Assembly: GCA_028023455.1 (NCBI GenBank)
Contig: JAQFVV010000010.1
Span: forward strand, 11,160,001 to 11,224,000
Length of the DNA stretch: 64,000 nucleotides
Source of the DNA: Epiperipatus broadwayi
Taxonomy: Eukaryota; Animalia; Onychophora
Direction: 5' to 3'
Shown here: positions 4,226-56,775 of the stretch, piece after piece
Layout of the letters: the number at the start of each line of letters is the position of its first letter
Position numbering within the stretch: position 1 is the stretch's first letter
Notes under the pieces: generated by a model
Told to the model about the DNA's origin: nothing
Database searches by the model: none
Seen by the model: the letters and a program-made list of their open reading frames with translations, nothing else
Translations under genes and position numbers: made by a program

Positions 4226-5171
4226 GACTACTAATAAAATAAACTCAAATATGTTAAAAATAGTTGAAATAAATCCATATTAACATAACGCTGCAATAAT
4301 ATCCTCTCCTCCAATCAATCATTGCCATAATATTTGCTTACCTGCCTATTCTTTTAGTATATCTATGGGTACTTGCATCTGTAATGAGAAATGTATATCA
4401 CAATTTTGTTTGAAAGCAAATATGAAACATATAAAATAATAATTATTTTTATGGGGCTAAGTTGTTTTTTTTAAAAAAAAAGTCTGACACACAGTAATTT
4501 AAAATTATAGAAATTATAAGAAAATTTGTTGATAAGCAAATTTAAAAAAAAAAAGACAATAAACTGATTTTATTATATTTATAAAATCACATGTAAGTTC
4601 ATATCCAATTTGTTACCTATAAATATCAAAAGTTTTGAATATAATTTGATCTTTTATTAAGAAATATGTAGATGAGTTTCCTATTGGGATTAGACCTTGC
4701 ATTGTATCAGGTTTTCTATGAAATTAATCAGCAGTAGGTAGAGGGCATTAATCTAAACTGTAGGAGATATTAGAATAAAAAATTTTTATGCCAGTATAGT
4801 TTCACTAAATTTATTGCCTTATAGATACACTCTTACATAAATGTGTGTGCATTCGTTTTTAATTAATAAAAAGTAATTTTTTAATCAGAAGGAGGAGCAA
4901 TTAGATTAATTAAGCAAACTCTTTAAAAAAAAAAAACAAATCATATCAATCCCTAATAATATACAGGGCTTGTAGTTCTAAATATATGGATGGATGATTA
5001 AAGGGAGTTTGAAAATCTGGGTTTAAATCCCCTTTAATTACAAACTATCATTGGCAAAAATAAGAACTGATGCTTGATAATAATATATTATTTAGGTACT
5101 ATACTTGCTTTCAGTCAGAAAACTTGGGAATTAGTAATATTTATGTATTTATAATTCAAAAGATGTAAGAT

Positions 5172-5274
5172 GTCTTGCATTGGTGGTCGAGAGATCAGCG
5201 CGACTGCCTTACAAGCAGTTGCCCGGGTTGCGGGTTCGCGTCCCGGCCGATGCTATGACACTGGAAAAAAAAAA
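5172..5274 (+). mobile_element. tRNA-derived short SINE, subfamily B, with poly(A) tail and target-site duplication
   Basis: gcattggtggtcgagagatcagcgcgactgccttacaagcagt...gcgggttcgcgtcccggccgatgctatgacactgg(A)n. It is flanked by aaaagatgtaagatg on both sides (about 5157-5172 and 5271-5286). Confidence 0.9.
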
Positions 5275-5879
5275 GATGTAAGATGAGATAAAAAGCTTAA
5301 TTTATTTTCATTTATCTTTAGAATAATGGTAGAATCCATTAAGGATTTAATAGTCTATATAGATCTCTGCCAATTATACAGTTTTCTATACAGTTTTCAG
5401 TGATTCTTTTATTGTATTAACAGGTAGAGGAATGAAAATTACTGGTTACTTTATGCACTTTGTTTTATAGTAGTGAATGGAGATCTTTGGGAAGGGGGGG
5501 GGGGTAAAATAGAATATGACGTATAAAACAGAAATATAAAAAAAATTGTATTTACGATATCTCTTGTAAGAAGTATTTAGTAAAACTTTACTTAAAATAT
5601 ATATTTAGAAGATTGATATGAATTTGGTTTTACTATAAATAACGAAACGAATTCTTTTTAAACGACTGAGAATATTACATATTATTGTTAATAAATCTTG
5701 TATATATATATATTGGAGGGAGGGAGAAAGTTTCCCGTCTTATTATAAACTAAACTGAATTTATTTTTGAAAAAAGTTAAATAAAAAGGTTATTGAGCAA
5801 ATAAAGCACATCTCAATAAATGTTTTAGATGTTTTAAACTTACAAAAAGGATGTAATATTTCAATACAAGTATATATAA

Positions 5880-6315
5880 TATACTTCTATTAAAATATTA
5901 CTTATTCAGCCTGTATTCTGCTTATTCCTCTTCTGTGTATTAAAATGGGCTTAAGGTCCTGCATGTGAGGAGTCAGAATGACTTACAGTTAACATGCGTA
6001 TGACAAAAAAATTGACAAATAGGGGCTTTGAACATGCCATCATCAGATTTTCAATGATATGGATGGCTGAAGAGTTGGATAGTGGAGAAGATTGAAGCCC
6101 GTCCATTAAAATTTAAAGATTTTCTATCTTTAATTTAAACTGAGCATTGATTATATATGTGTGTGTGTGTGTGTGTGGAAGATGATGATCCGGATCAACT
6201 GATGACTGGTGGTTCAGCACAAAATATGTATATTGAAGATCATTTATCTTTTATGCATATATGTGGCCATGTCTATTGGTTGTTTGGATGACTAAAGGGA
6301 GCTACAGAAAAAGGA
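5880..6315 (+). mobile_element. Copy of the 463-bp HHR-bearing repeat family (family H463); degenerate HHR at 6195-6236
   Basis: Aligns by eye with 55490-55945 and 42735-43040. Motif tcaa-CTGATGA-ctggtg-gtt-cagcac-aAAA-tatgtat-a-ttga. Confidence 0.8.
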
Positions 6316-7913: not shown

Positions 7914-8142
7914 CTGTTATTAAAACAGGCAAAACTCACTATACGTATTGCCACACACAGCAAGCTAGAGTAATCAATGGATTCCAGAAGGCTTGTGCAT
8001 AAAATCCCCATCTGGTGCGTATTCATCCAATATCTTCAGACTAGTTTCTGGCTTGTGGCCTTCATCAGTGAAAAATACGTGTAGTGAGTTTTGCTTGTTT
8101 TAATAACAGTTATAAGCAAGCATAAGAAGTGGTGATCATGTG
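7914..8142. mobile_element. HHR-bearing repeat family H200: minus-strand copy joined head-to-head to a partial plus-strand copy; HHR at 8034-8073 (-)
   Basis: Minus strand tttca-CTGATGA-aggccacaagcca-GAAA-cta-GTC-tgaag. Same sequence at 22562-22700 and 54318-54721. Confidence 0.85.
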
Positions 8143-10444: not shown

Positions 10445-10535
10445 TTTTCACATATACCATGGTCATGTGTATCAGTTGTATAAGATGGAGTGGCTAGCTG
10501 TAGGAGCTTGGAAGTCTGAGTTCAAATCTCTTCCA
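10445..10535 (+). mobile_element. Partial H463 copy (tRNA-like segment only)
   Basis: ggtcatgtgtatcagttgtataagatggagtggctagctgtaggagcttggaagtctgagttcaaatc matches the post-HHR part of H463. Confidence 0.65.
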
Positions 10536-28019: not shown

Positions 28020-28806
28020 ATGTAAACATTACAAGCATAAAGCTAAACTAGTCAATATATAATTAAAATTACCCCAAATCCAAAATTCAACCAGACCAGC
28101 ATAAAAATAATATTAAAACACTACCAAAGGTTTCACTGCTTCAAGCAGACTTCTCAAGTGTAAAGAACTACAAAAACTACATAATATATATAATATTAAA
28201 CATTACCCACAAATCCATTCACTTCCCACCGACCCTTAATATTAAAAGAACTCTTAAATAAATTAATTGCTTCAGAATAATAAATTTTCAATAATAAAGA
28301 TTCTTTAATTCTTCTTTTGATTTCATTTCTCTCAAAGAAGACAACCTTAGCTTCATCAAAATCAATAGTGTGGCCTGTATCTTTTTCATGGACATACAAA
28401 GCAGAACTAAGACATCTATTTTTAACTCTACTTTTATGAACCTTTATTCTTTCATTTAAACTCAAACTACTCTGACCTATGTAAACCACCAGGAATAGTC
28501 TTTCTATCAAAAATTTCTTTTGTATTATTTAATAAATTATTCAATGTAACACCCCTTTTCCAAGCAATTTTCTTATTTCCAAACAATTTACTATTTCTAC
28601 ATACAATTTTATAAGAAGACAATTTAAATGGCAAAGAAATAAAATCATATTTTTCTTTAACCTTTACATCCTTACAAATATTACTATTAAATAAAATACT
28701 TTTAACAAATTTATCAGAGTAACCAACGCTCAAGTAGTCTTTATAAAATTGATATTTTTAAAACAAAGCTACCCCACTAGAATTATTTAATTTATTATTC
28801 CTATAG
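28020..28806 (-). mobile_element. Inverted, truncated Penelope-like copy (GIY-YIG region plus 3' end; HHR-like motif at 28118-28161)
   Basis: Minus ORFs 28196-28510 and 28467-28733 nearly identical to 28947-29730, with an about 35-nt deletion in the GIY-YIG core. Confidence 0.9.
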
Positions 28807-28811
28807 ATCTT

Positions 28812-29567
28812 TTGGTGATTAGAAATGTAGAGACTAATTGTTTACTGTGCAGTCATTTGGTTAAAAGTAAAGAATTAAGATCTATAATTAAACCTGATAG
28901 CTATCAGTCTGTATCTCATAAAGTAGCTGCTTTAAGGAATTATTGTCATAGGAATAATAAATTAAATAATTCTAGTGGGGTAGCTTTGTTTCAGAAATAT
29001 CAATTTTATAAAGATTATTTGAGTGTTGGATACTCTGATAAATTTGTTAAAAGTATTTTATTTAATAGTAATATTTGTAAGGATGTAAAGGTTAAAGAAA
29101 AATATGATTTTATTTCTTTGCCTTTTAAATTGTCTTCTTATAAAATTGTATTTAGAAATAGTAAATTGTTTGGAAATAAGAAAATTGCTTGGAAAAGGGG
29201 TGTTACATTGAATAATTTATTAAATAATACAAAAGAAATTTTTGATAGAAAGACTATTCCTGGTGTAGTATATTTTATCCCTTGTTTATTTTGTAAGAAG
29301 GTTTACATAGGTCAGAGTAGTTTGAGTTTAAATGAAAGAATAAAGGTTCATAAAAGTAGAGTTAAAAATAGATATCTTAGTTCTGCTTTGCATGTCCATG
29401 AAAAAGATACAGGCTACACTATTGATTTTGATGAAGCTAAGGTTGCCTTCTTTGAGAGAAATGAAATCAAAAGAAGAATTAAAGAATCTCTATTATTGAA
29501 AATTTATTACTTGAAGCAATTAATTTATTTAAGAGTTGTTTTAATATTAAGGGTGGGTGGGAAGTGA
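28812..29567 (+). CDS. Penelope-like element C-terminal ORF fragment with GIY-YIG endonuclease (5'-truncated, RT core absent)
   Basis: GVVYFIPCLFCKKVYIGQS...LNERIKVHK...SALHVHEKDTGYTIDF...IKESLLL is the typical PLE endonuclease pattern. Confidence 0.85.
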   Translation: MVIRNVETNCLLCSHLVKSKELRSIIKPDSYQSVSHKVAALRNYCHRNNKLNNSSGVALFQKYQFYKDYLSVGYSDKFVKSILFNSNICKDVKVKEKYDFISLPFKLSSYKIVFRNSKLFGNKKIAWKRGVTLNNLLNNTKEIFDRKTIPGVVYFIPCLFCKKVYIGQSSLSLNERIKVHKSRVKNRYLSSALHVHEKDTGYTIDFDEAKVAFFERNEIKRRIKESLLLKIYYLKQLIYLRVVLILRVGGK

Positions 29568-29624
29568 ATGGATTTGTGGGTAATGTTTAATATTATATAT
29601 ATTGTGTAATTTTTGTAGTTCTTT

Positions 29625-29668
29625 ACACTTGAGAAGTCTGCTTGTAGCAGTGAAACCTTTGGTAGTGT
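29625..29668 (+). ncRNA. Minimal type I HHR variant with U3/A8 substitution in the Penelope-like 3' region
   Basis: ACAC-TTGAGAA-gtctgcttgtagcagt-GAAA-cc-ttt-ggT-A-GTGT: helix I ACAC/GTGT, helix II CTGCT/AGCAG, helix III ACC/GGT, GUA triplet. Confidence 0.65.
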
Positions 29669-29740
29669 TTTAATATTATTTTTATGCTGGTCTGGTTGAA
29701 TTTTGGATTTGGGGTAATTTTAATTATATATATACATATA

Positions 29741-37049: not shown

Positions 37050-37610
37050 CCCTTTTAATATATCTGATTTTCAGCACATACACATGGCTATTTACATTTA
37101 ATAAATGATTAGTAATAATCATTATGTGTTTATCAAAAAGTTGATAACATAAAAGCTGGGAGTGAAGTAAATTGATGCTTGAAAATAAAAATGAGACAAT
37201 TTGCTCTACATAAATACTCTTCATGTAATAAAGATATATATATATATATGAGAGATGATGACCTGGCCGAACCGAAGAGTGCTGGTTCAGCACAAAGTGC
37301 ATCTTGGGGGTTATTTGTCTTTTATTGTATCTTTATTTATATGAGATTATTTATGAAATAAAAAAGAATGGAAAAGTATGGAAATTGTCTATAAAAAGAT
37401 ATTATACATGGGAGAAAGAGATACATAAATAGCCATGTGTGTGTGTGTGTGTGTGCTGAAAATCAGATATATTAATCTTTAACTTGGATTAAAGTTTATA
37501 TCTGTGCTAGAGAAAATCTCTAGTTTAATAAATGAGTAGTAATAATCATTACGTGTTTATCAAAAAGTTGATAACGTAAAAATTAGGAGTGAAGTAAATT
37601 GACCCTTTTA
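37050..37610. repeat. Composite of an about 80-bp direct repeat, an about 40-bp inverted repeat and a partial H463 copy (degenerate HHR about 37267-37310)
   Basis: taataaatga.tagtaataatcatta.gtgtttatcaaaaagttgataac at about 37097 and 37527; atatctgattttcagcaca mirrored near 37450-37470; ccgaagagtgctggttcagcacaaag. Confidence 0.65.
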
Positions 37611-41940: not shown

Positions 41941-42734
41941 TTGTACTTCTAAAAAAAAAAGTAGCATTAATCAGAAAATAGAAAAGTAAATCAGCACTGA
42001 AGTAAAAAATACTTTGAGAAGAACTTGTCTGAAAGAAATCTGGACAATAAATGAAAGTGTAAATTTATTATGTTATTGGACAGCATTGGATGAGATCGCA
42101 AGGTTTATTTGATGGGATCACAAGATTAGACATTGTGAATATGAAAAGGCATAGCATGCCTCCTGTGTTGCAGGTCTACTATGTTACTACCGATTTTTTT
42201 AATAATAGCATGTGTGTTTCTTTTATAAAACCACATGCATCGAGATTTTCCACTTCATTTCCTGTATCCAAACCAATCCCATTCTAGTATTTTGTCATAA
42301 TACTAGCATAATTTTAACTTTTTAATTGATCTGATCTTGAACATTATCAATCCAGATGATTCAACCATGTGTCTGTCAAGACCAACAATTACCACATAAT
42401 TAATCTTATTAATTCTGATAAAATTATTAAATAATTTTTTAACTTGGTTAAATTATTTATTTATTTTCAAATTAAACATTCTCTTATTCAAATATACTAT
42501 TTTCACTGTATTTAATTCTTACTTTATTCTAATCAAAAGCTTTTAATATTGGAAATTAATTTGATGTATCTTTTTTTTTAAAAAAAAAAAATACATTTTT
42601 TATAAAAAAAATTTAACTTTCAATATTTCACATGCATGCTCCAAACATTCAGACACACAAATATACTTTAAATATAGCCATTATTTTTAAATAATGAATG
42701 GGTATGACAATAATATTGGTACCAGCATAGGATT

Positions 42735-43040
42735 TGGACTTTTCATCTCAGATTTTCAATGATATGGATGACTGAAAAGTTGGAGGTTGGAGTAGATTGA
42801 AGCCTGTCCATTAAAGTGTGAAGATTTGCTATCTTAATATAAACTGAGCACTGATTATATATATATGTGTGTGTGTAGGAGATGATAATCTAGACCAACT
42901 GATGAGTGCTGGTTTAGTATGAAATACTTTTATGGGTGATTATTTATCTTTTCTACATGTATGTGATCATGCAAATCAGTTGTATGAGATAGTGTAGATG
43001 GTTGAAGAGTGCTTGAAAGTCTGAGTTCAAATCCCCTATA
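42735..43040 (+). mobile_element. H463 copy with HHR at 42895-42936 and B-box-like gagttcaaatccc
   Basis: ccaa-CTGATGA-gtgctg-gtt-tagtat-GAAA-tactttt-a-tggg. Confidence 0.8.
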
Positions 43041-44379
43041 TTTAAACAATGAAAATAAATTAGTTACTGACTAACATTTAAAACCAATTGAAATTGACAG
43101 TTAACCCAGTCTATTATATTTAATGTCTTTAAAATTTTAATTTTAATACTCTTACCTAAATTGGCATTTAATAAACTATAACTTTCAAATTTTTTATTTT
43201 AAAAATTAACAATTGAAAAATTTAACAGAATTAAATAACCATTTTTATACAACATGAAATAACTTTATCTATTATATTTACTCCAAACATGGCAAGGCTT
43301 TAAATTGACTTTTTTTAAATTCAATCTATCAATTTTATTCTTTCTACCAAATATTAAGCAATCTAAGTTTTTTTTTTTTAAAAAATAATTGATACCTAAA
43401 TAGGCTTATTTAAATCCAATAGTATTGAAACATTTAACTTAAGATTTTTATTATAATAGTACTAATAAGAAAATTCATTTATTATATTCGAAAAAAATTT
43501 TTTAATACTTTAAAACATATATTTAACCCACAGGGTTAAATATACGTTACATATATATATACACACTGATATCATAATCATCTATAAAGATGAAGGCTTC
43601 CAATCTTTACAATATATATATACACTTAAGTACACATACATATTTATCTATATTACTAATACATTTATTGATTATATGATAATCACCAAAAGACATTGAC
43701 ATGTGTCACTTTATGAATTTATAAATATGCAAGTTTCATTTATGTAATTGACCAAGATATTTACTAATACAGTTTTAAACTCCTAATTCTAAACAGACAG
43801 TAATCAATCACTATACATTCAATAAAAACAATGTTGGTTTAATATGGCAGTACAGTGCATGGGTAGCCATTACATCTGTTTAGAATTAAAGTTTCAGTTT
43901 AGTAAAGCTTTATTCTTTTGCTATCCATTAATAATTAAAAAAAAAAGACTAGAGATTAAAAACATTTAAAATTTTCAGTCTTTCTATAAAACAATTTTAA
44001 GTTGAATATGAAATGTCTTAGTGTTTAAATTACACTGTGGATATTGAAAATCTGTATATTTAAACAACCAAGAAACAAATATGTGTAATATTATACATTA
44101 TTATTACTTTTTTCAGTTGATCTTCATGATGAAAAGACATAATTATTTTGTGATATAGCATTAATTTGAAATGCTAAAATAAATTATATTAAAGATGGTG
44201 GCAAGCAGTGTTACATCTACCAGTCAATGATGATCAAATATTATCACTTGTTTTTAATACCTTATGGTTTAGTTAGCCCTAAATTATTTTTGGGGCAAAT
44301 CACAACACCTGTATATATATAATTAATTTAATTTCATATGTCTAAAATCAAATAAAAATATTTTTTAAAATGAATATAT

Positions 44380-54317: not shown

Positions 54318-54721
54318 TATACGTATTGTCACACACAGCAAGCTAGAGTAATCAATGGATGCCAGAACACTTGTGCATAAAATCCCCATCTAGTGCCTAC
54401 TCATCCAATATCCCCAGACTAGTTTCTGGCTTGTGGTCTTCATCAGTGAGGAGCTGACGGCCACAAGCCAGAAACTAGTCTGGGGATATTGCATGAGTAG
54501 GCACTAGATGGGGATTTTATGCAAGCTCCTCACTGATAAAGGCCACAAAACAGAAACTAGTCTGGGGATATTGGATGAGTAGGCACTAGATGGGGATTTT
54601 ATGCACAAGCCTTTTGGCATCCATTGATTACTCTAGCTTGCAGTGTGTGGCAATACGTATAGTGAGTTTTTCCTGTTTTAACAACAGTTATACACAAGCA
54701 TAAGAGGTGGTGGTCATGTGA
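54318..54721. mobile_element. H200 palindromic locus: minus copy (HHR 54412-54451), partial plus copy (54459-54522) and full plus copy (HHR 54527-54567)
   Basis: Minus strand cctca-CTGATGA-agaccacaagcca-GAAActaGTC-tgggg; plus strand cctca-CTGATAA-agggccacaaaaca-GAAActaGTC-tgggg. Confidence 0.85.
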
Positions 54722-55065
54722 TAATAAATTCCTTTAAAAAATTTAAACTAGGTTATTTATGATGATAATAGGCTAAAAAAATTGATTAAAGTTAGATGAT
54801 AATGAGTAAATAAATTGATAATAAAATGTAATCTCTGCTAATAAATGATGTAATCGCTAATAATCTGTATTTATTCTAAACCATAAGAAAGTATTTGCAG
54901 ATTATAATCGTAGATCAGCAATGACCCGAGAGTGCCAGGTTAATCTCAATATTCCAGCATCTAAACAGAGGCATACTGCAACTGTAGATTATTAGATATA
55001 CTAAATGCTATATTGTTTAAATACAAACATAGCATATATTTCTAAACTAGATGTAAGTAGAAAGG

Positions 55066-55945
55066 ATTTGAATCCAGACTTTCAAGCTCTCTTCAGTTAT
55101 CCAATCCATCTTATACAAGCGATACACATGACTACATACATATGAAAAAGATAAATAATCTTCAATATACATATTTCATGCTGAATCAGCACTCATCAGT
55201 TTGTCTGGATCATCATTGCCCATATATATACAGTCAGTACTCACTTTATATTAAAATAGTAAATCTTTAAACTTTAATGGACAGGTTTCATTCTTCTTCA
55301 CTCTCCAAGTCTTCAGCCATCTATATCATTGAAAATCTGATGATCCAAACTAACTGGTGAGTGCTGGTTCAGCACCAAATACATCTATTGGAAATCTTTT
55401 TTTTCTCACATGTATGTAATCCTGTGTATCCATTGTATAAGATGGAGTGGATGACTGAAAGGAGTTTGGGTTCAAATCCCCTCTAATTACTTCTAGCTTA
55501 AGCATATATATTTATACTTGTATTTGAATATTACAGATTCAATATGTATTCTTCCTATTCCTCTTCTATGTATTTAAATGGTCTTAAGGTCTTACATATG
55601 AGGAGTCCGAATGCATACGATCAACATGATTATGTCAATAAAATTAGAAAACAAGACTTTGAACATGCCATCACCAGATTTTCAATGATATGAAAAGCTG
55701 AAGAGTTGGAGAGGGGAGAAGATTGAAGTCTGTCCATTAAAGTTTGAAGATTTGCTTTTTTAATATAAACTAAGCACTGATTATATATATATGAGGCAGA
55801 TGGTGAACCAGACCAACTGATGAGCATATATTGGATATTATTTATCTTTTTCATATGTATGTGGTCATGCATATCGGTTGTATAAAATGGAGTGGATGAC
55901 TGAAGGGAGTTTGAAGGTCTGGGTTCAAATCCCCTCTAATCAAAT
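55066..55945. mobile_element. H463 locus: minus copy (55066-55343, HHR 55162-55203) head-to-head with a plus-strand HHR-to-HHR tandem (cores at 55354 and 55817)
   Basis: Minus strand CTGATGA-gtgctg-att-cagcat-GAAA-tatgtat-a-ttga; gggttcaaatccc at 55468 and 55921. Confidence 0.85.
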
Positions 55946-56775
55946 GCTATATTGTGTATATATATATGTGTAACTTTTAATGAGTCATCATATGTATATA
56001 TGAATACAGTTTTTAACTTCTTGTGAATGTGTTTCACTCAATATATTTATAATAGTACTGAAGTTTTGGATTAATATTATCTGGATAATATGGTTGGTTC
56101 AGAAACTGACCACATATGAATCAAATTTTATGAAACCGTGAGATAACTATCAGAAAAAAATTTAAGAGAACATTAAAATTCTAGCTTCATTAATAAACAT
56201 AAACAGCAGAGCTTCTCATTTATATTGAAATATTTTATAAAATATGTCAATCAAAAAAAAAAAACCTGACAAATTAATTACCAATTTCTGTAAAATAATT
56301 AATTAACAGTTAAATTTCAATCTAGGTGATCTGGAGTCAGTTTTGTCTGTAGAAATAGCTTCTAAATGATCCGCATCACCCAGACAATAATTTTATTATA
56401 ATAATAAAATTGGTTGTATTATAATAATAGTGAAACACATGGAAGAATCCAGACCTTTTGTCAATAATTTTTTTTTATCCTAACACATGTACAAGTGTTG
56501 ATCTTGGGTATTTAGGCATAACATTTTTTAATAAATTTTCAAATTTAGTTCACATTGGGCAGTTAGACCATTCTATGATTTATGTTATATAGTAATACTT
56601 ATAATTTATTTTGATAAATTTTCATCATTGCATAACCTTAACTCTTAAGCAAGAATATCACAATCCTTGCATTATTGCTTATATGTTGAAATCATTAACG
56701 AATTTGCTGGCATTAGTTTTAAAATCTGTACTTATATGCAAATTGTCAATTTATGTGTTAGTAAATACATAATAA

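Follow-up and report, generated by a model that had tools for sequence, protein, structure and literature searches.

A 64,000-nucleotide stretch of the genome of the onychophoran Epiperipatus broadwayi (assembly GCA_028023455.1, contig JAQFVV010000010.1, positions 11,160,001 to 11,224,000; hereafter the window, numbered from its first letter) carries, at 55003-55962, three copies of one repeat: an arm on the (-) strand, a partial (+) copy and a full (+) unit. We propose, with a probability of about 0.8, that this locus is a composite insertion of a high-copy, non-coding retroelement of 474 nt that was mobilised by the machinery of a Penelope-like element (PLE), i.e., that the repeat is a PLE-derived retrozyme without long terminal repeats (a non-LTR retrozyme). 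This reading is preferred because the two fixed 3′ termini of the family, its pseudo-LTRs and its inverted truncated partners match the published footprint of PLE insertion. As judged from its consensus, the ancestral unit carries the motif of a canonical minimal type I hammerhead ribozyme of the dimer type, as in PLEs. The element is a further member of a published kind and opens no new class.

Family size and insertion ends

The sequence analysed belongs to a 5.6-Gb assembly, and the G+C content of the window is 27%. When the genome was searched with the window copy, >8,456 first-look candidates were obtained, and 40 scored copies were 76-82% identical to the query. Thirty-five full copies were aligned, and their majority-rule consensus of 474 nt served as a coordinate ruler only; sampled copies are on average ~88% identical to it. 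The 5′ 14-mer of the hammerhead, CTGATGAGTGCTGG, has 50,049 exact occurrences in the genome (control, 1) and is retained in about 29-40% of sampled copies, which suggests roughly 1.2-1.7 × 10^5 copies in the family and its close subfamilies. Its annotation accounts for ~1% of this genome. No meaningful open reading frame (ORF) was found in the unit, and the earlier description of the repeat as a non-autonomous retroelement is upheld. By analogy with the Anolis PLE, whose ORF begins at its hammerhead, a relic ORF was considered (49 open codons, from the AUG in CUGAUGA to shortly beyond the first 3′ terminus); it was dropped, since other frames are similar and no sampled natural copy keeps the frame.

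The family has a sister subfamily with a unit of ~490 bp, in which TTGGTGATTATTAATCTTTTCTACATGTGTGTGG follows the hammerhead; ~10,000 copies keep an exact 20-mer of this segment, and arrays of at least three hammerheads are included. The sister-subfamily consensus was read by eye from the commonest genome strings. Short contigs from four other organisms (runs X1-X4) match 55338-55945 by the thousand at 80-95% identity, hammerhead included, and the deepest contig pile-up is on the helix II segment of the hammerhead, so that the family, or its hammerhead, appears to be common to related species; no ends and no joints open to interpretation were seen in these contigs. A large natural data set is at hand: the copies number some 10^5 and form two or more subfamilies, and four or more of the other organisms sampled carry relatives.

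The ruler was mapped on 29 family loci and on the window, and the aligned pieces were chained into 77 arrays, to which the end positions below refer. The 3′ ends are bimodal: unit positions 455-474 account for 48 of them and positions 29-49 (peak at 43-45) for 19, both far above the uniform expectation. Both termini fall at (A/T)ATTACA, 43-45 nt apart, with unrelated flanking DNA directly after, and at the junctions read no poly(A) or simple-repeat tail was present. Genome-wide, a 20-mer from the 3′ module of the unit has 13,645 matches and a 20-mer crossing the first terminus has 4,193, from which it can be deduced that about two thirds of the units stop at the first terminus (~31% continue).

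The 5′ ends are scattered from position 1 to position 436. A reading made earlier from the window letters only (the sequence-only reading) had described a monomer of 463 bp delimited by hammerheads. The family copies are where it had placed them, and the (+) hammerhead cores do start at 55354 and 55817, 463 bp apart; the inserted unit, however, is not delimited by the ribozyme. Cleavage is predicted between unit positions 362 and 363; the fixed termini of the unit follow 112 and ~155 nt further downstream, and no 5′ end of the 77 arrays falls within 10 nt of the predicted cut.

A short upstream piece followed by a full unit, in some cases with the tail after it, was found in 16 of the 77 arrays, and others hold longer partial units. 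The commonest complete layout is a short piece starting at 379-436, a full unit and sometimes a tail of ~43 nt. Many arrays have an inverted 5′-truncated partner, the 5′ ends facing each other; among the first 100 hammerhead matches, nine pairs were head-to-head, three were tandem and none was tail-to-tail. Most insertions comprise 1.05-1.6 units or head-to-head pairs, and arrays rarely exceed two units. Further hammerhead-to-hammerhead tandems, on the existence of which the sequence-only reading had partly staked its case, were looked for genome-wide, and 788 exact pairs at a spacing of 459-489 bp were found, some of them consecutive or triple (control, 0). Tandems are nevertheless a minority, of ~5% of hammerhead-bearing copies after correction for decay and ~12% of arrays locally.

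Three hallmarks of PLEs are absent from non-LTR elements, namely a pseudo-LTR, an adjacent inverted 5′-truncated copy and a 30-40 bp tail (PMC8557442), and the tail is the stretch between two internal start sites of reverse transcription downstream of the hammerhead (PMC11167929). All three are found here, in an AT-rich context, and the tail is bracketed by the two termini. At 43-45 nt it is slightly longer than the published one. The distance from the hammerhead to the first start site is 112 nt here and ~85-92 nt in the Anolis element (PMC11167929), and both termini share ATTACA after a GGG/CCC hairpin, whereas the Anolis element has an AC-rich stem-loop. The internal-initiation model was drawn up for a single lizard element, and the ATTACA termini that follow a conserved hairpin here are an independent parallel to it from an unrelated animal. 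Overall, the repeat has the testable features of a PLE-type minimal hammerhead (covariation excepted), of a PLE-mobilised insertion and of an animal non-LTR retrozyme, and it lacks those of a short interspersed nuclear element (SINE) that is derived from transfer RNA (tRNA) and depends on a long interspersed nuclear element (LINE).

Two clusters of 5′ ends stand out, although their intervals were picked after the data had been viewed and the sample is small. The first, at 379-383 (6 of 77 arrays; loci L002, L009, L010, L017 and L018, and window position 10445), falls 17-20 nt past the cut site, where the predicted, extended helix I has its 3′ foot. One possibility is that it records the folded or cleaved hammerhead domain as a 5′ boundary of the template in vivo. 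The second cluster, at 174-192 (9 of 77, mostly inverted arms, window position 55344 among them), is near a T4 run.

The ancestral hammerhead

The hammerhead-core pattern has four matches in the window, and none was obtained in 100 shuffles. At the two CpGs of the hammerhead consensus, the alignment columns mix TG and CA, which is the signature of decayed CpG. The CpG-restored consensus that the sequence-only reading had rebuilt was recovered: as the 42-mer CCAACTGATGAGTGCTGGTTCAGCACGAAATACGTATATTGG it is present in 59 verbatim copies in the genome, and in 6,676 with up to two mismatches (reversed control, 0). The restored consensus and the 59 exact copies read CUGAUGA-(helix II)-GAAA-UACGUAU-A↓UUGG, the arrow marking the predicted cut. 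All positions that define a minimal type I hammerhead with a palindromic helix III, the class assigned from the start, are in place: C3 U4 G5 A6 N7 G8 A9, G12 A13 A14, the A15.1-U16.1 pair, and A17 before the cut. Helix II (GUGCUG/CAGCAC, 6 bp, loop GUU) is closed by G10.1-C11.1. Helix I (CCAA/UUGG, 4 bp) is open-ended, and a predicted outer stem lengthens it. Helix III is an 8-nt palindrome, AUACGUAU, without a loop, so that closure within one molecule is impossible.

Covariation of helix I, which had been claimed from a few window copies, was not borne out. On 20 copies no covariation above that of shuffles was detected, either in paired cells or in double changes (2 cells with both sides changed versus 4.8 expected), and the TCAA/TTGA pairing at 6195 is a single cell. 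The absence of covariation among copies would follow from neutral decay after insertion: once inserted, the hammerhead decays like its flanks, at 0.83-0.85 identity. The comparison of the two subfamily masters gives a different picture. The hammerhead differs between them at 1 of 42 positions, versus 18 of 102 in the downstream flank (Fisher p = 0.014, with a consensus read by eye), and the sole change, C to U, keeps a G.U pair. Better conservation than the flank between subfamilies argues that the hammerhead would matter for propagation, though that of the Anolis element was dispensable for insertion in vitro.

The hammerhead region (unit positions 306-371) is also a deletion hot spot. In the 35 full copies, 17 of the 39 deletions of at least 5 nt overlap it (p = 6 × 10^-5), and most of these take out the perfect helix II hairpin. 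This fits either slippage at the hairpin or its skipping by the reverse transcriptase.

The hammerheads of PLEs are of the minimal type and work as dimers, their helix III being palindromic (PMC4209133). Like them, the motif described here combines a long helix II (6 bp) with a short helix I (4 bp) and a loop-less palindromic helix III, occurs in massive copy number within the repeated (pseudo-LTR) part, and is found as dual motifs on opposite strands 100-700 bp apart. Unlike them, it has no unpaired nucleotide between A9 and 10.1 and lies in a 474-nt non-coding unit and not beside an ORF for reverse transcriptase and GIY-YIG endonuclease.

With animal non-LTR retrozymes (PMC7229834), the repeat shares a non-autonomous, low-GC, non-coding unit, a type I hammerhead, partial tandem arrangement and co-occurrence with PLEs. 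Its unit is longer (474 nt versus the published 170-400 nt), and its insertions are mostly of 1.05-1.6 units or inverted pairs and not multimers. Animal retrozymes have been proposed to be non-autonomous derivatives of PLEs, and the vertebrate ones to have arisen from PLE pseudo-LTRs (preprint 10.64898/2026.07.22.740005). Amphibian retrozymes have a dimer-dependent hammerhead, and the motif predicted here is likewise of the dimer type. The schistosome repeats Sm-alpha and Sj-alpha are, like ours, short, high in copy number and equipped with a type I hammerhead (PMC2770079). They differ in that the boxes are here downstream of the hammerhead at the 3′ end, with a weak A-box, no tRNA fold and a PLE-like footprint.

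The 3′ module and the rival explanations

Upstream of its first terminus the unit carries motifs that resemble the internal promoter of RNA polymerase III (Pol III). The motif GGTTCAAATCC agrees with the B-box consensus GGTTCRANTCC throughout (11 of 11 positions), and its only occurrences in the window are those in the two (+) copies of this locus (2 versus 0.09 expected). The match is 11/11 in the family consensus and 10/11 in the sister subfamily, and the hairpin that contains this B-box/T-loop-like motif ends ~10 nt before the first 3′ terminus. The hairpin has GGG/CCC in one subfamily and GAG/CTC in the sister, possibly a compensatory pair in one pairing register. The A-box-like motif AGATGGAGTGG, spaced 37 nt from the B-box, has 8 of the 11 positions of its consensus. 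The corresponding region of the sister subfamily is AGATAGTGTGG: the AGTGG part is lost, and the motif is not kept in register. No tRNA fold was found by ARAGORN or the Rfam tRNA model in the window locus, ~50 family copies or the consensus; ARAGORN was run on the 29 family loci and on a consensus dimer at default and 90% thresholds, and at 70% it gave only scattered spurious calls. Within the inserted unit the whole box module is 3′-terminal, downstream of the hammerhead, in the order that had been noted as circularly permuted relative to a hammerhead-to-hammerhead monomer. Inside the unit there are a T4 run (191-194) and a T5 run (378-382), which would tend to halt Pol III before the 3′ start sites of the next unit. 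Of the promoter claimed for the repeat, a good B-box thus stands; the A-box, weak and lost in the sister subfamily, and a tRNA-like fold do not.

We regard the 3′ module as belonging, primarily, to an RNA element that the PLE enzyme would recognise at initiation. That the box hairpin is in addition a working internal Pol III promoter, renewed at each insertion via the pseudo-LTR, is doubtful; it would make the repeat a hammerhead-processed 'SINE of Penelope-like elements'. No published description was found of a repeat that is Pol III-transcribed, hammerhead-processed and PLE-mobilised.

According to the model that we favour, the element, which lacks a gene of its own, is moved in trans by a PLE, which supplies the reverse transcriptase and the endonuclease. 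Reverse transcription began at either of the two internal ATTACA sites, 43-45 nt apart, giving the two 3′ ends and the tail of ~43 nt. The first start site is immediately preceded by the hairpin with the T-loop-like GGUUCAAAUCC; this hairpin would be part of the module recognised by the PLE enzyme, and need not be a Pol III promoter. Copying of an RNA of more than unit length left the upstream 5′-truncated pseudo-LTR, often with an inverted truncated arm placed head-to-head. Two hammerhead motifs, from a tandem transcript or from two RNAs, could pair into a double hammerhead, and the cut would fall between the A and UUGG. A dimer-type hammerhead and a Penelope footprint in a unit small enough to dissect would make a clean test system.

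Several observations weigh against this model. No autonomous PLE with homologous ends was found: one PLE family was compared (30 loci), and neither its DNA nor its protein resembles the repeat. In most cases no target-site duplication can be recognised; in an automated search a flanking repeat of at least 10 nt was present at 5 of 44 clusters versus 3% in controls, a weak enrichment. The Rfam hammerhead models match neither the window (gathering threshold) nor ~50 decayed copies (E ≤ 10), and scans of the locus and 19 family loci at E ≤ 10 gave only chance microRNA and small nucleolar RNA matches, to inverted arms. Motifs with a loop-less helix III do escape standard descriptors (PMC4209133). 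Finally, published PLE minimal hammerheads cleave poorly in vitro (PMC4209133), and the hammerhead is dispensable for PLE insertion in vitro (PMC11167929).

The last point leads to the view that the hammerhead is a passenger, inherited from the end of an ancestral PLE and without a part in the propagation of the repeat. Hammerhead mutants have no effect on PLE insertion in vitro, and no Anolis RNA reads end at the hammerhead site (PMC11167929); in the present family no genomic 5′ end lies at the cleavage site, and after insertion the motif decays like its flanks. Against this stand the conservation between the subfamily masters (1/42 versus 18/102, p = 0.014), a sole change that preserves pairing as G.U, and the canonical state of every core position in a family of roughly 10^5 copies, and we hold a mere passenger to be improbable, with about one chance in four left to it by our reckoning.

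The sequence-only reading had favoured another scheme, that of a retrozyme delimited by hammerheads and driven by its own tRNA-type Pol III promoter, which would cleave itself, circularise and be copied by rolling-circle reverse transcription. We consider this unlikely, and slightly more so than the passenger view. It would explain the B-box (perfect in the consensus and the two window copies, 10/11 in the sister subfamily), the 37-nt spacing of the boxes and the T5 run after the hammerhead, as well as the enrichment of 5′ ends just upstream of or within the box region (23 of 77, at 379-436). Arrays of more than one unit and the 788 tandems are expected from rolling-circle copying; linear multi-unit transcripts, however, account for the arrays equally well. 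Sm-alpha is said, from work of Ferbeyre et al. in 1998, to carry tRNA-like Pol III box motifs. That Sm-alpha and Sj-alpha are SINE-like repeats bearing a hammerhead also speaks for the scheme (PMC2770079). The absence of a tRNA-like fold from copies and consensus alike, an A-box of only 8/11 that is out of register in the sister subfamily, and T4 and T5 runs that would stop Pol III before the template reaches the 3′ start sites are hard to reconcile with it. Moreover, ~35 nt separate the 379-383 cluster of 5′ ends from the A-box downstream of it, a distance too great for a type 2 start, and the termini lie away from the cleavage site.

The box-like motifs, the very high dispersed copy number and the occasional tandem array would also suit a SINE of the ordinary tRNA-derived kind, moved by a LINE, or a satellite spread by unequal crossing-over. 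In the repeat, however, the box module is at the 3′ and not the 5′ end of the inserted unit, the ends abut unrelated flank after ATTACA without a poly(A) or simple-repeat tail, and the arrays, dispersed over thousands of loci, are seldom longer than two units. Pseudo-LTRs, strictly head-to-head inverted partners and a pair of 3′ termini 43 nt apart are, in addition, features reported to be absent from non-LTR insertion (PMC8557442). An origin of this sort is very improbable.

The locus at 55003-55962 and other features of the window

The window locus (about 55010-55941) fits one old composite insertion, with a tail on the (-) arm and none on the (+) array. The inverted, 5′-truncated arm (55010-55344, (-) strand) was delimited by BLAST to the family ruler at 88% identity; it comprises family positions ~182-474 (55054-55344) and a tail of ~43 nt (~55010-55053) that aligns with unit positions 1-~45. 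Head-to-head with it abuts an upstream 5′-truncated direct copy (55338-55489, (+) strand; unit positions 313-474), the pseudo-LTR of the (+) array. The full unit follows at 55492-55940 ((+) strand; unit positions 3-472) and, having no tail, stops at the first 3′ terminus. A 14-bp direct repeat, AAATGCTATATTGT, at 55003-55016 and 55942-55955 may be the target-site duplication of the whole composite; the assignment is ambiguous, with the left copy abutting or overlapping the end of the tail.

Hammerhead remnants are present in all three copies, as had been read from the sequence, but none is intact. In the (-) arm (55162-55203, (-) strand), the alignment row retains the CTGATGA and GAAA cores and a helix II with one G.U pair; two helix I pairs are lost (2 bp remain) and the helix III palindrome is broken (TATGTA). 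Its predicted cleavage site lies between 55166 and 55165. The remnant of the upstream (+) copy (55350-55391, (+) strand) is inactivated by CTGGTGA (A6 to G) and by the change of GAAA to CAAA (G12 to C), both of which hit essential core positions. In the full unit (55813-55834, (+) strand), a 20-nt deletion (unit positions 337-356) extends from helix II to GAAA inclusive, one example of the hot-spot deletions described above. All three local hammerheads are dead, and the window copies are neutral fossils, ~12% off the consensus.

The 3′ modules of both (+) copies are preserved. That of the upstream copy (55436-55489, (+) strand) contains the A-box-like AGATGGAGTGG at 55440-55450 and the hairpin with the B-box/T-loop-like GGTTCAAATCC at 55469-55479, and ends at the TAATTAC terminus; that of the full unit (55885-55940, (+) strand) has AAATGGAGTGG at 55885-55895 as its A-box-like motif and GGTTCAAATCC at 55922-55932, and terminates at TCTAAT.

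Elsewhere in the window, a 5′-truncated copy (42698-43044, (+) strand; unit positions 137-474) keeps an intact hammerhead core, with helix II decayed to G.U pairs and helix III broken. A near-full copy (5868-6303, (+) strand; unit positions 11-443) is accompanied by an inverted tail fragment at 5852-5886 ((-) strand), and a further copy lies near 37237-37323. A solo 3′-module fragment of 55 nt (4986-5040) was found ~140 nt upstream of a tRNA-Val (TAC) gene at 5177-5254, the sole predicted tRNA gene of the window; its nearness is probably a coincidence.

PLE sequences are extremely abundant in this genome, with 127,214 first-look candidates for the PLE family of the window alone. Two PLE 3′ ends lie inverted and head-to-head at 28020-29735 of the window. 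They include a GIY-YIG ORF (28812-29567, (+) strand), and ~60 nt beyond its stop codon comes a hammerhead-like motif whose core is a variant one (CTTGAGAAG...GAAAC). This PLE family is young, has many long open frames genome-wide, and has a different 3′ untranslated region. It was considered as the mobilising partner and rejected, given the different 3′ untranslated region, the variant core and the lack of DNA or protein similarity.

Other hammerhead-like sequences were also encountered. At locus L012, just outside a family copy, positions 2180-2220 ((-) strand) gave a near-threshold match to the Rfam Hammerhead_1 model (31 bits, the gathering score being 34); this is evidently a separate family of hammerhead repeats. 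In the window, a different hammerhead-core family, CTGATGAAG(G/A)CCACAAGCCAGAAA, is present at 8045-8068 and 54423-54446, both on the (-) strand.

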